A stretch of 44,651 nucleotides of DNA, taken from assembly GCA_002269645.1 (NCBI GenBank), contig NIVC01004479.1:1-44651 (forward strand), in the 5' to 3' direction. The stretch is from Macrostomum lignano. Its lineage: Eukaryota. Both the position numbers and the translations under genes were made by a program. The notes below the pieces were generated by a model. The model was given only the letters and a program-made list of their open reading frames with translations, was not told the origin of the DNA and ran no database searches. Shown here one piece after another: positions 18,651-24,600 of the stretch (its first letter is position 1; the number at the start of each line of letters is the position of its first letter).

Positions 18651-21600
18651 ATGAGTCCGGACACCACTGCGACCGCAGTGAGTAGCAGTCTGCGCCGATT
18701 CTGCGACTACACAACTGCCCACGGACTTGGCAGATTCGGTGCACAGACCGGCAGATTCGGTCGCACAGTGTGGCTGTGTTTCCTGCTTGGCACCTACACC
18801 GGTTTCACCTATCACGTGTACACCTTGGTTGCTCATTTCGTCAGCACGCCATTGACTACTAGTCTGACCGAGTCGCTGCCTTTCAAGCTGCCAGATTTGT
18901 ACTTCTGTCCGAGCGATATTGTGCCGATGAGCCGAGTGAGCAAGCCGATCGATAGCGCCTCGGTGATGCGCAGCAGCTCATGCAATCGGATCTGCCGGGA
19001 GCGGCAGCTCGAGTTCGATATTGAGGAAGACTTTGAGGCTGGCAATGGTAGCAAGAAGACGAAATTCAGCGACGCCGCAATGGCTCTCTCGGACGCGTTC
19101 ATAGCTGCGGAGGAGGCGCTGGTGCAGGCGATGGTGTTTAAAAGCTCGGGTGAGTGGCAGATTGATATCCACCTACCGCTATGTAGCGTAAGTAGTTATA
19201 GAGTAGACTGTTCAACGTTAGACTACATGTATTTACAGGTGCTAGTGACTTTATTTAGTTAATTTTAATTCCAAAGTCTTTAAGGCAGAATAGCTCAGCG
19301 GTTGACGCTTTCGACTCTCGCGCCGAAAGGCCCGGGTTCGAATCCGCGCGCTATCAAAGATTAATTTGAATAATTTGAGAAAATTAGACTGGGTGCTTGT
19401 ACGATACTTGCGCATCAAGGCGACAGAGGACAGTGCGTGCTCAGGGGTCAGTGGGATTGCCACGACTGCTCACATTCTCGCCTGTCCTCCGTCGCCTTGG
19501 AACTGCCGCACTGCTCAAAGGCATTAATTATTTGGAAACGGGGCACCTTGAAGTCTTGATTTTGACAAAAATATTAATATGACAGCCAAGTATTAGTAGT
19601 AATAACAATTTTCACTTGTTTGTTCGGTGTAAAATACCGATATGTATCGAAAAAATATTTCGTAAAAAATTTCAAAATAACTTATCCGTATAACTCATTG
19701 TGGTTTACCGCCGATATGTATAGTAATACACTTTATAAAGGGTTTATTTTGCTTTCGCTACGCAGCCCATCCCAGCCAATGTCGAACCACAGTCGCCGGT
19801 GAAGAGTACACTGGCAACCGCAGCTGGGCAGTGGTGTACTCCTCCAGCTACCTGCCCGTGTCATCAGGCCCAGATGTCGCCGCCGCCAACGCCAAGCCGT
19901 TCTCAAATCGAGTGGCCTGCATTTCTTGGAATTCGGCCGCTCGAAAATTATTATCAAATTCGAACTATACTACTGAAGGTAATTCGACACTGAACTCTGA
20001 TTCTATGCGACTCGCTTATCGTCTGCTGGCTTTGAATTTGTCGGAAAACGACAACCGATGTCGACAACCAGTGGGTTTGCCACTGACAGAGTTTTACGGC
20101 ATCGCCATTCGTAAGTGTGCAAAGTTTATAGACTAATTTATAACAACCAGGGGTACTTTTAAGCGTCTGTTGGCACTAAGTTGATAGTAGCATACCCAAC
20201 CCCATAGACACCACCCTTATAATCCCCGTATTCCATAGACGCCACCCTTATAATCCCGATATCCCATAGACACCACCCTTATAATCCCCATATCCCATAG
20301 ACACCACCCTTATAATCCCCATATCCCATAGACACCACCCTTATAATCCTCGTATCCCATAGACCAACCCTTATAATCCCCGTATTCCATAGACACCACC
20401 CTTATAATCCCGATATCTCATAGACACCACCCTTATAATCCTCGTATCCCATAGACACCACCCTTATAATCCCCGTATTCCATAGACACCACCCTTATAA
20501 TCCCCATATCCCATAGACACCACCCTTATAATCCCCGTATTCCATAGACACCACCCTTATAATCCCCATATCCCATAGACACCACCCTTATAATCCCCAT
20601 ATCCCATAGACACCACCCTTATAATCCTCGTATCCCATAGACACCACCCTTATAATCCCCGTATTCCATAGACACCACCCTTATAATCCCCATATCCCAT
20701 AGACACCACCCTTATAATCCTCGTATTCCATGGACACCACCCTCATAATCCCCATATCCCATAGACATCGCCTTTATAATCCCCGTATCCCATAGACACC
20801 GCCCTTATAATCCCGAAATCCCATAGACATCGCTTTTATAATCCCTGTATCCCATAAACACCACGTACCACCCTTACAATCCACATCTCTCAAATCCCTT
20901 ACAACCCCATAGACACACATATAAAGTCAATAGGTGTACATCAACAAGGCATAAAAAGTATTTTAATGGCATTGAAACCGATGTATTTTAACAATGAATC
21001 ACCAACTGGACTAACAGACCCAATACAGGTGTACGCTGGTTGCTACAGCAGATCTGTCATCAGCACCATATTTTCCGAGCAATGCTCGTTTGATAGTACT
21101 CAAAACCTACTGACGCAAGAGCTATGCGCCGAATGCTGTTATAAAAAACTGTATACTCACATGGGTCTCTATTGGAATCAGTGCGTTTGCGGAAATGCAA
21201 CCTTGGCTTTGAGTACCAGCATTTGGTTCATGTCAAGTGACGAGAGTCAATGCTTCGACTCGTGTCCTGGCAACGAGAGTCAGGTGTGCGGCGGCTTTAT
21301 AGAATTTGCTAGCGTCTATCAACTGCGCAACAAAGGTGATTTTCCTTCTCTTGTGGTTTCTGCTAAGAAATTACAAAGCGACATGACAGAGCGTGAGGTG
21401 GGTGTAACTGTACACTGCGGGGTAGAGAGTAAGCTATTAATAGAACATCGAAGAGAGGTAATCCCCATAGGCGTGAGGTGGGTGTAACTGTACACTGTGG
21501 GGTAGAGAAGTGAGCTATTAATAGAACAAGGAAGAGAGGCAAGCTTCATGGGCTTGAGGTGTAATTACGCGTATCAAGGAATACGAGCGTATCTAGTGAT

Positions 21601-24600
21601 AGAGAAGCAATTGAACGAGTGTGGATTGAGCTTTGTACGTAGAGAATTCACTTATTCTTTAAACACACGCAGAAAGCGCGCCCCTGCGGATACCGTTCCG
21701 AATGTCGCTGCCAAGTTTCAACGCCGGGCCCTACTGTTTCTATCTAGACAGCGACAATGTGAATGAATTGTCGGCTACCTATTGCAATGTTCCCTATTGC
21801 AGTGAGTGTAATTTACAATACTAACTAACTAACTAACTAACTAACTAACTAACTAACTAACTAACTAACTAACTAACTAACTAACTAACTAACTAACTAA
21901 CTAACTAACTAACTAACTAACTAACTAACTAACTAACTAACTAACTAACTAACTAACTAACTAACTAACTAACTAACTAACTAACTAACTAACTAACTAA
22001 CTAACTAACTAACTAACTAACTAACTAACTAACTAACTAACTAACTAACTAACTAACTAACTAACTAACTAACTAACTAACTAACTAACTAACTAACTAA
22101 CTAACTAACTAACTAACTAACTAACTAACTAACTAACTAACTAACTAACTAACTAACTAACTAACTAACTAACTAACTAACTAACTAACTAACTAACTAA
22201 CTAACTAACTAACTAACTAACTCAATCCTTCAAGCGCTTGACAACGCCGAACTTGACTGCCTTCGCACTGACGCAAAAGGCGATGTTGGCAGTGTTGAAG
22301 TGAGCCGGTACACTGGCCAGCTGGTCAGCTCAGGTGCTATCAACGAGGACGCGGGTAGCAACAAGGACAATAATACTTGCCAGCCGTGGACTTTAGTGAA
22401 GCAGCAACTAGAAGCTGGGCTTTGGAAATACCCGATTAGATTGAGCGGTGCTGGTTTTAGTAAGTATATTTAGTATATAGGATAAGCTTTATGAAAGTTT
22501 ATACCAAGAATAGCTACTATGTATGTACTAACTACAATACTAATTATCCATTCGTTTAGATTCGACCTCGATACTCGTAACTGCGGTTACCATAGAAACG
22601 GCCGACTACGATTTGCATAGCAACAATAGCGGAGCCTATTGCCGCGCTGCTAGGGTGGTTTTGGATTATAAGCAAATCGCTCACAATGGAACGTTTTCTT
22701 TTGGGTGAGCTGAACTGGTGACTGGGGGCGGAAAGCTGCTAAATGAGGGAGCGGAAAAGTGCTACACAGGAGCGGAAGACTGCTTGATGAGGGCGGAAGA
22801 CAGCTAAATAGGGCCTGAAGAGAGCTAAATAGGGCCTGAAGACAGCTAAATGGGGGCGGAAGACAACTTGATGGGGGCGGAAGACAACTTGATGGGGGCG
22901 GAAGACAGCTAAATGGGAGCGGAAGAAGACAACTTGATGGGGAGCGGAAGACAGCTAAATGGGAGGGGGCGGAAGACAGCCTGCAGCAGTAGTAAAGACT
23001 AATAGATAAGAAACGAACCGTTGTCCACTGCCTGCTTTCAGGCGGCTCGAAGTGGCATCGCCAAACAGCCCCGTGTGCCCCATAGAGACCAACAAAGTCG
23101 TGGCGTTTGAGAACTGCATCTGGATCAAGGCTTGTCGTGAGTTGAGGCTTCTACTTGTTGCGGAGAGTGTAAGATGGGGAGAAAGGAGAGAGGAAAGAGA
23201 AGATACAGAGACAAGGGAAGGGAGGAGAGAGGAGAGAAGAGAGGAGAGGAGAGAGGAGAGAGAGTAGAGACAAGATGAGAGAGGAGAGGAGAGAGAGAGG
23301 AGAGACAGGAGGAGAGAGGAAAGGAGAGGAGAGACAGGAGAGGAGAGAGAGAGAGGAGAGAAGAGAGAAGAGAGAGGAGAGAGAGAGAGGAGAGAGGAGA
23401 GAGAGGAGAGACAGGAGGAGGGAGGAGAGGAGAGGAGAGAGGAGAGAAGAGAGGAGAGAGGAGAGAAGAGAGGAGAGAGGAGAGAAGAGAGGAGAGAGGA
23501 GGGAGAGGAGAGGAGAGAGGAGAGAGGAGAGGAGAGAGGAGAGAAGAGAGGAGAGAGACAAGAGAGGAGAGAGAGAGAGGAGAGAAGAGAGGAGAGACAA
23601 GAGAGGAGAGAGAGAGGAGAGAGGAGAGAAGAGAGGAGAGACAAGAGAGGACAGAAGAGAGGAGAGACAAGAGAGGAGAGAGAGGAGAGACAAGAGAGGA
23701 GAGAGAGGGGAGAGAGGATACAAAAACAAGAACGAGATGCAGGAGAGGGGAAGAGAAATGAGAGCAGAGATGAGCGATAAATGTTGGCAAAAGTAAATGA
23801 AATAATTTCATTAAGGTCCAATAAAACTCAGAAATTCTAAACTTTGAACCCAAACCCTATCCAGACTCCGTCGTCCGCAGCATCGCTGGCGTTATACGCG
23901 ACCGCATCGGCGGCGCCAATTTATTGCGCCAATTTGGCGCAAGCGCCAGCGCTGGAGTGATCGCTTGTTCGGTTGGCGAGGCCACCTGCAGTTCATCGGA
24001 TTTTCTCACCTTGGCCCATCCGGATTTCGGACTCTGCCATCGATTAGACAGTCGCCGGATGACCAAACTGCTCGGGCAGAGTCAGAAGCCTTCTGATGTC
24101 AGCCTCTCCGTGACCTTCTTCACTGACTCCGCAGATTCGGCCGGGCGGAGCTACGCAAATCTGACCAAGCTGAGGCACATATTGGCTCCAGGATTGTGGC
24201 AGCAGAAGCTGGCTGGCAGCTCGGCGGCTTTGAAGGTCGGCGCGGGTAGAAGATGGCAGATAGAGATGGCAGTGAGGGTAGAGGATGGCAGATAGAGATG
24301 GCAGCGAGGGGTAGAGAATGGCAGATAGAGATGGCAGTGAGGGTAGAGGATGGCAGATAGAGATGGCAGCGAGGGGTAGAGAATGGCAGATAGAGATGGC
24401 AGTGAGGGTAGAGAATGGCAGATAGAGATGGCAGTGAGGGTAGAGAATGGCAGATAGAGATGGCAGTGAGGGATAGAAGATGGCAGATAAAGATGGCAGT
24501 AAGGGTAGAGGATGGCAGATAGAGATGGCAGCGAGGGGTAGAGAATGGCAGATAGAGATGGCAGTGAGGGTAGAGAATGGCAGATAGAGATGGCAGTGAG

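Follow-up and report, generated by a model that had tools for sequence, protein, structure and literature searches.

The window analysed here is a stretch of 44,651 nt from the flatworm Macrostomum lignano (contig NIVC01004479.1). The sequence is eukaryotic, with GT-AG introns crowded with tandem repeats and with several retrotransposons, and it holds a gene for a channel of the DEG/ENaC family. Exons 2-4 of this gene encode a WSC domain enclosed by the two halves of another module. The domain-in-domain layout was confirmed and is conserved in paralogues; the enclosing module is probably derived from a kringle and heavily remodelled, and we put the probability of this reading at about 0.65.

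The channel gene and its extracellular cassette

With M. lignano proteins as guides, 13 exons (18651-37817, plus strand) were joined into an uninterrupted frame of 1095 amino acids (aa). The gene model is predicted from genomic DNA and these paralogue guides (P0001, P0003 and others). The exons are as follows.

18651-19149, plus strand: exon 1, with the ATG start, the DEG/ENaC N-terminus (YTTAHGLGRF), the first transmembrane segment (TM1) and the start of the extracellular domain; it ends in phase 1 (donor GCTCGG/gtgagt)
19766-20110, plus strand: exon 2, phase 1-1, N-terminal half of kringle-like module 1 (Cys172, Cys218, Cys265; EEYTGN, CISWN, RCRQP)
21018-21335, plus strand: exon 3, phase 1-1, complete WSC domain with 10 Cys
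21673-21801, plus strand: exon 4, phase 1-1, C-terminal half of kringle-like module 1 (GPYC409FY...YC425NVPYC430)
22235-22459, plus strand: exon 5, phase 1-1, part a of kringle-like module 2 (Cys439, RYTG, Cys479-x-x-W)
22560-22704, plus strand: exon 6, phase 1-2, part b of module 2 (ETADYDL...AYC533RAARVV)
23042-23136, plus strand: exon 7, phase 2-1, part c of module 2 (SPVC566...ENC579IWIKAC585)
23865-24235, plus strand: exon 8, where the DEG/ENaC extracellular domain resumes (C620...C627..DF...GLC643H); 40% identity to P0001; the second ASC stretch begins at aa 615
35148-35350, plus strand: exon 9 of the channel gene
35933-36043, plus strand: exon 10 of the channel gene; its acceptor was picked by spacing to P0003 and is hence less certain
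36220-36751, plus strand: exon 11, Cys-rich thumb and palm part of DEG/ENaC
37433-37514, plus strand: exon 12 of the channel gene
37585-37817, plus strand: exon 13, second transmembrane segment (TM2, GLWSGVSVLTACELIELI), C-terminus and stop codon

The 1095-aa protein scored 137.9 bits against Pfam ASC (PF00858; cut-off 23.6), in two stretches that align to profile positions ~1-105 and 151-455; Pfam also calls the WSC domain in the full protein. Exon 1 gives an ASC match of 40.8 bits over aa 17-118 and is 48% identical to P0003. The hallmarks of DEG/ENaC channels are present, including YTTAHGL (the HG motif) at aa 20-26, TM1 at about aa 40-63, and the G-x-S TM2 GLWSGVSVLTACE from aa 1022. The two ASC stretches flank a cassette of ~420 aa (aa 167-586), which consists of a kringle-like half, the WSC domain, the other half, and then a second kringle-like module. 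Based on the profile coordinates, the cassette appears to interrupt the variable finger region of the extracellular domain. A preliminary description of this DNA had recognized the nested domains, which stand, but it missed the channel that carries them.

Exons 2, 3 and 4 have GT-AG borders, each is phase 1-1 and a multiple of three in length, and with their neighbours they form a single open frame. The acceptor and donor are cgctacgcag/CC and ATTC/gtaagt for exon 2, ggactaacag/AC and AAAG/gtgatt for exon 3, and acacacgcag/AA and TGCA/gtgagt for exon 4. The acceptor at 21018 is the only in-frame one for exon 3, and the WSC exon of P0003 begins at the identical split His codon (C/AC). A more obvious AG eleven bases downstream (21027-28) would start the exon at 21029, which is out of frame, and it was rejected. 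The preliminary description had placed a whole WSC exon between an exon with Cys1-3 and an exon with Cys4-6; exon borders, phases, frame and the Pfam WSC score all bear this out, and the span it gave (19766-21801) coincides with the exact outer exon borders.

Exons 2-5 (19766-22459) are four successive phase 1-1 exons whose lengths are multiples of three; each of them, the WSC exon included, is skippable in frame. Alternative splicing could in this way toggle the nesting of the WSC domain. No second copy of the cassette was detected by tblastn within the window.

A WSC domain between two kringle-like halves

Judged by its Pfam score, exon 3 is a true WSC domain: the exon alone reached 38.5 bits (PF01822; gathering cut-off 27.8), and 31.4-34.6 bits were obtained within longer constructs. 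AlphaFold2 models were made for the M. lignano homologue P0003, which is 38% identical to the window protein, from an alignment of the family plus the window exons (10 rows). In Foldseek the WSC fold of this homologue matched yeast Wsc1 (7pz2; E 6.7e-6, target-normalized template modelling score, TM(target), 0.77) and Kremen1 (E 4e-5). Ten cysteines are conserved in the WSC domains of the family, compared with the usual eight; the extra ones, C304 and C321 in the window protein, may make an additional disulfide.

The exons on either side of the WSC exon encode exactly three cysteines each. The product of exon 2 is ...SQC(172)RTTVAGEEYTGN...AC(218)ISWN...NRC(265)RQPVGLPLTEF, with the stretches ...SQCRTTVAGEEYTGN...ACISWN...NRCRQPVGLPLTEF read in frame, and that of exon 4 is ...GPYC(409)FY...ATYC(425)NVPYC(430). 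The six cysteines (C172, C218, C265 / C409, C425, C430) follow each other in kringle order and are invariant in the 6 family members. They are flanked by the kringle motifs Y-x-G, C-x-x-W, C-R-x-P and P-[WY]-C, the first three of which are likewise invariant in the 6 members; the GPYCF...C motif of exon 4 is present in 11/11 family sequences. A close local resemblance was seen between M. lignano 'RYTGHRSKTKTRDNCLNWS' and 'NYRGTMSKTKNGITCQKWS' of plasminogen K1. Exon 4 scored 10.6 bits against a kringle hidden Markov model (HMM) of our own, at kringle positions 54-78. When family members were compared with 24,736 Pfam models, Kringle was the only family that recurred across them, always collinear and always below the cut-off (up to 22.7 bits).

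The kringle character of module 1 was assessed by profile-profile comparison, with a profile of 10 kringle sequences verified against PDB entries and the six-member family alignment as the query. With the WSC domain deleted, hhalign gave a probability of 93.5-93.7% (E ~2e-7, 61-62 columns, score 42.8); the alignment spans the deletion junction and matches Cys2, Cys3, Cys4, Cys5 and Cys6. With the WSC domain retained, the result was 42% over 14 columns. The exon 2 half alone gave 50% (score 26.5; shuffle maximum 19.1), the exon 4 half alone 86% (score 29.1; shuffle maximum 16.1), and module 2 84%, while the WSC-versus-kringle control gave 0.07%. In 200 column shuffles of the WSC-deleted alignment the mean score was 11.5 (standard deviation 2.4) and the maximum 21.6, compared with the observed 42.8; the kringle-like pattern therefore exceeds chance. 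None of the 200 shuffles made for each alignment reached the observed score, be it the WSC-deleted module (K1del), its N-terminal half (K1N), its C-terminal half (K1C) or module 2 (K2).

The complete cassette, in the order K1N, WSC, K1C, K2 inside a DEG/ENaC protein, was found in M. lignano proteins that fall into five clusters at 90% identity (P0003, P0023, P0027/P0155, P0035, and P0091/P0160), and the fragments P0001 and P0084 carry the part from the WSC domain to module 2. The paralogues are 32-46% identical among themselves and 30-38% identical to the window gene. At the genomic locus of P0003, the K1N, WSC, K1C and K2a exons lie at matching positions and all are phase 1-1. Paralogues with a WSC insert, for which the preliminary description suggested a search, exist, with introns and phases identical in P0003. 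Deposited M. lignano proteins hold the nested order in one polypeptide (PAA82974.1 for P0003, PAA47210.1 for P0155, and PAA86857.1 for P0160), and the deposited paralogue gene models support the exon connectivity. Since layout, introns and phases are common to diverged paralogues, the arrangement probably predates the diversification of the family. Sequence common to the window and the M. lignano locus in blastn was restricted to low-complexity repeats.

Among the best 150 matches of a HMMER scan of 1.84 billion representatives, cassette carriers were solely from M. lignano. A homologue search with the spliced cassette returned one M. lignano fragment only, and the N-terminal query returned nothing. 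The relatives are annotated in databases only as WSC-domain-containing or uncharacterised proteins. Three further long matches among the representatives (P0018, P0054 and P0097), multi-WSC proteins of fungal type, lack the GPYCF...C motif and were rejected as relatives.

A second kringle-like module, with six Cys and no WSC domain, is encoded by exons 5-7. The UniProt entry A0A1I8GTV5, an isolated fragment of module 2, is named 'Kringle domain-containing protein'. In the homologue model the expanded loops of module 2 form a three-stranded sheet with no significant match in PDB; the module may be a distinct elaboration of the kringle fold.

Alternative explanations and a possible fold

Several results weigh against a kringle identity of the two modules. 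The rejoined halves of the window gene (exon 3 removed) scored 7.5 bits (E 7) against Pfam Kringle (PF00051; cut-off 34.3), with only the last 28 aa aligned, and the five rejoined M. lignano paralogues scored 0-14.3 bits; as the preliminary description had expected, a standard HMM scan misses this kringle. Module 2 reached at most 21.8 bits, also below the cut-off, with the paralogue counterparts of the exon 5 part at 15.6-21.8 bits. When a 2-sequence profile was searched against PDB sequences, WSC chains were the only matches, and the Kremen kringle was aligned at 3.7 bits. The PROSITE-type kringle signature, [FY]-C-[RH]-[NS]-x(7,8)-[WY]-C, was not found in module 1, where the context of Cys3 is R-C-R-Q. 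Module 1 has ~150 aa without the WSC domain, and its Cys3-Cys4 segment, again without the WSC domain, is 38 aa long compared with 11-12 in kringles. Module 2 is also ~150 aa long, about twice the size of a kringle (~80 aa), with expanded Cys2-Cys3 and Cys3-Cys4 loops, the latter of ~32 residues. The intron in this Cys3-Cys4 loop is phase 2, not phase 1, and a pre-existing phase-1 intron is therefore not corroborated; a search of the available literature for the intron phases of kringles yielded nothing.

No significant kringle was recovered by the structure models either. The K1N-WSC-K1C model of the homologue had a predicted local distance difference test score (pLDDT) of 71 and a predicted template modelling score (pTM) of 0.60, and was most confident in the Cys2-Cys3 segment, the WSC domain and the Cys4-Cys5 hairpin. 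Foldseek matched it to WSC and Kremen structures, and the sole kringle retrieved (2k4r, neurotrypsin) was aligned over 18 columns with E 1.8; the alignment behind the model had little depth, and local structural aligners have difficulty with a kringle whose halves are more than 100 residues apart. The model of module 2 (pLDDT 74, also from a shallow alignment) retrieved no kringle in Foldseek. Helices and long strands are predicted at the positions of kringle loops. The kringle fold expected from the preliminary description did not emerge from these homologue models.

Taken together, the missed Pfam cut-off, the Foldseek results for both modules, their size and predicted helices and long strands, and the negative PDB profile search favour an explanation in which the flanking exons are not kringle-derived at all. 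They would represent a lineage-specific Cys-rich elaboration of the DEG/ENaC finger that mimics the kringle Cys pattern, with the WSC domain lying between two such segments. We consider this unlikely. The hhalign match (93.5%, E 2e-7) is collinear over five of the six cysteines and its score is far above the shuffle maximum and also above the WSC control, Kringle recurs at the right positions among all Pfam models, UniProt independently names module 2 a Kringle, and the local motif is close to that of plasminogen K1. Although module 1 fails formal membership of Pfam Kringle, it is best read as kringle-derived, an identity for which profile comparison is the sole basis. The kringle identity of the rejoined halves proposed in the preliminary description is thus supported by the profile-profile comparison but not by the single-sequence Pfam score.

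The two halves might also be relics of two different kringles, left from an ancestral kringle-WSC-kringle array after losses of a C-terminal and an N-terminal half-exon. In that case the layout would have arisen by decay and not by insertion, and a single fold would not be required. Kremen-type proteins do carry a kringle and a WSC domain in tandem (PMC5014086), and each half is its own symmetrical exon, the loss of which preserves the frame. No family member without a WSC domain that could show the state before insertion was found, in an aimed search that recovered not even the known members and is hence uninformative. This history is nevertheless quite improbable. It takes two exon losses where one insertion is sufficient; the cysteines of each half, odd in number (three), are unchanged across six members with mutual identities of 30-46%, which suggests that the six cysteines act as one set; and the combined hhalign score of 42.8 approaches the sum of the halves (26.5 + 29.1) in a collinear register. 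The present-day topology would in any case remain a WSC domain between two complementary halves.

That the nesting is an artefact of the gene model, with exon 3 an alternative cassette exon or the exons joined otherwise, is very improbable: the window model is a prediction from genomic DNA, which counts against the nested reading, and exons 2, 3, 4 and 5 can each be skipped in frame, but the three deposited polypeptides hold the nested order, the P0003 gene has matching introns, the only in-frame acceptor of exon 3 is the one in common with a paralogue, and optional skipping would leave the nested isoform in place.

Under the reading of module 1 as a split, kringle-derived domain, exon 2 would supply the Cys1-Cys3 half and exon 4 the Cys4-Cys6 half, with the WSC domain sitting in the Cys3-Cys4 loop. 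The disulfides of the Kremen1 kringle are 1-6, 2-4 and 3-5, and the strand order of the WSC sheet is b1-b5-b3-b4-b2 (PMC5014086). All three disulfides connect the segment that precedes the Cys3-Cys4 loop with the one that follows it. The two halves of module 1 could thus form one core stapled by the predicted 1-6, 2-4 and 3-5 disulfides, from which the WSC domain would project as a loop excursion. Because the published sheet places its first strand (b1) beside its last (b5), the ends of the WSC domain can sit close to each other. The odd number of cysteines in each half (3 + 3), the even number in the WSC domain (10) and the adjacent WSC termini fit the picture of a single stapled core. As to its origin, the arrangement may plausibly have arisen by insertion of a symmetrical phase 1-1 WSC exon before the family diversified.

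Genomic setting, related systems and implications

Features of the window other than the channel exons are listed below.

20201-20864, no strand: 31-bp tandem repeat, 21.5 copies, taking up most of intron 2 (tandem-repeat scan)
21820-22222, no strand: perfect (ACTA)x100 microsatellite in intron 4 (tandem-repeat scan)
24805-29264, plus strand: retrotransposon of the long terminal repeat (LTR) type in intron 8; its two LTRs (24805-25050 and 29018-29264) are 99-100% identical
31130-34869, minus strand: open reading frames (ORFs) of a LINE-like (non-LTR) retrotransposon in intron 8, recognized from translations only

The load of tandem repeats is very high, with 40 TRF rows and many arrays of 0.4-2 kb (periods 4-49 bp) that fill introns and intergenic DNA; in addition to the two repeats listed, examples are found at 5779-7803, 9241-10946 and 42571-44219. 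The LTR element sits in a 32/33-bp satellite array (24244-24806 and 29260-31035) and contains a gag-pol ORF (25074-28076) that continues in other frames; the element is young. The LINE-like element has two long ORFs (762 and 484 aa) with reverse-transcriptase-like and RNase H-like sequence. Intron 1 includes a tRNA-like stretch (19281-19352, plus strand) with A-box-like and B-box-like motifs (TAGCTCAGCGG ... GGTTCGAATCC). It was called as a tRNA by neither ARAGORN nor Rfam, and may be the head of a tRNA-derived short interspersed element (SINE) or a decayed tRNA. Exons of a neighbouring gene (42186-44651, plus strand) carry 2Fe-2S motifs and are similar to the N-terminal part of xanthine dehydrogenase/aldehyde oxidase; this gene extends past the end of the window.

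The closest parallel to the cassette is Kremen1/2 (Kringle-WSC-CUB), the metazoan protein known to pair a kringle with a WSC domain, to which the homologue model aligns over ~200-220 columns (Kremen1, at the E value given above). In Kremen1 the kringle and the WSC domain are in tandem and tightly packed, and make up one ligand-binding surface (PMC5014086). Here, by contrast, the WSC domain separates two kringle-like halves; the protein that carries them is a channel with two TM segments and not a type I single-pass receptor; and the kringle-like module lies far below the Pfam cut-off and is about twice the normal size. Kremen has a CUB domain, whereas no CUB domain scored above the cut-off here, the only hit being CUB_M02D8_5_1st (16.8-18.3 bits) inside the ASC part. 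With the canonical kringles of plasminogen, tPA, prothrombin and uPA (PF00051), module 1 has in common the order of the six cysteines, the motifs Y-x-G, C-x-x-W, C-R-x-P and P-[YW]-C...C-x4-C, and the hhalign match. It differs by longer spacings at Cys1-2, Cys2-3 and Cys3-4, by the loss of NPD after Cys3, and by extra predicted helices and strands.

The finger is the most variable extracellular part of DEG/ENaC channels, and in ENaC it regulates gating. Lineage-specific elaborations of the finger include the GRIP domain of ENaC, the extra Cys-rich or regulatory domains of nematode degenerins and the nematode EGF-plus-ASC 'egas' genes. The addition in M. lignano is of this lineage-specific kind, in the form of recognisable mobile modules (WSC and two kringle-like). 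Nested extracellular domains are exemplified by laminin L4 inside a laminin-EGF repeat, and by the integrin beta I domain inside the hybrid domain inside PSI. In those cases too, one loop of a small host module rich in disulfides accommodates a complete domain; both host and guest differ here. We know of no kringle reported as the host of another domain. A literature search for 'degenerin' with 'WSC domain' yielded no paper combining the two, and with 'kringle' only a protease review. Both nested extracellular domains and lineage-specific finger insertions are already known kinds, and we found no description of a kringle/WSC cassette in a channel in the literature searched.

We propose that the cassette may serve to bind or tether glycan, matrix or protein outside the cell and would be coupled to channel gating via the finger. 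More specifically, and only as a tentative possibility, a clade of flatworm DEG/ENaC channels would have acquired, in the finger, a binding module composed of kringle and WSC parts, with the WSC domain locked in a disulfide-stapled kringle remnant, so that binding of an extracellular partner, or mechanical pull, would be passed directly to the gate. If true, a kringle would for the first time be known as the host of another domain, and the channel would possess an integral, modular tether or ligand sensor on its extracellular side. The known distribution is narrow, being confined to Macrostomum. If the nested fold is real, the gene would be a clean case from nature of one domain inserted into another, both of them mobile extracellular modules, in which the exon borders and phases can still be seen. 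It would also illustrate how such an architecture escapes HMM-based annotation, with relatives labelled only 'WSC domain-containing protein'. The presence of binding modules in the gating-relevant finger would then give a testable handle on the extracellular gating of DEG/ENaC channels.

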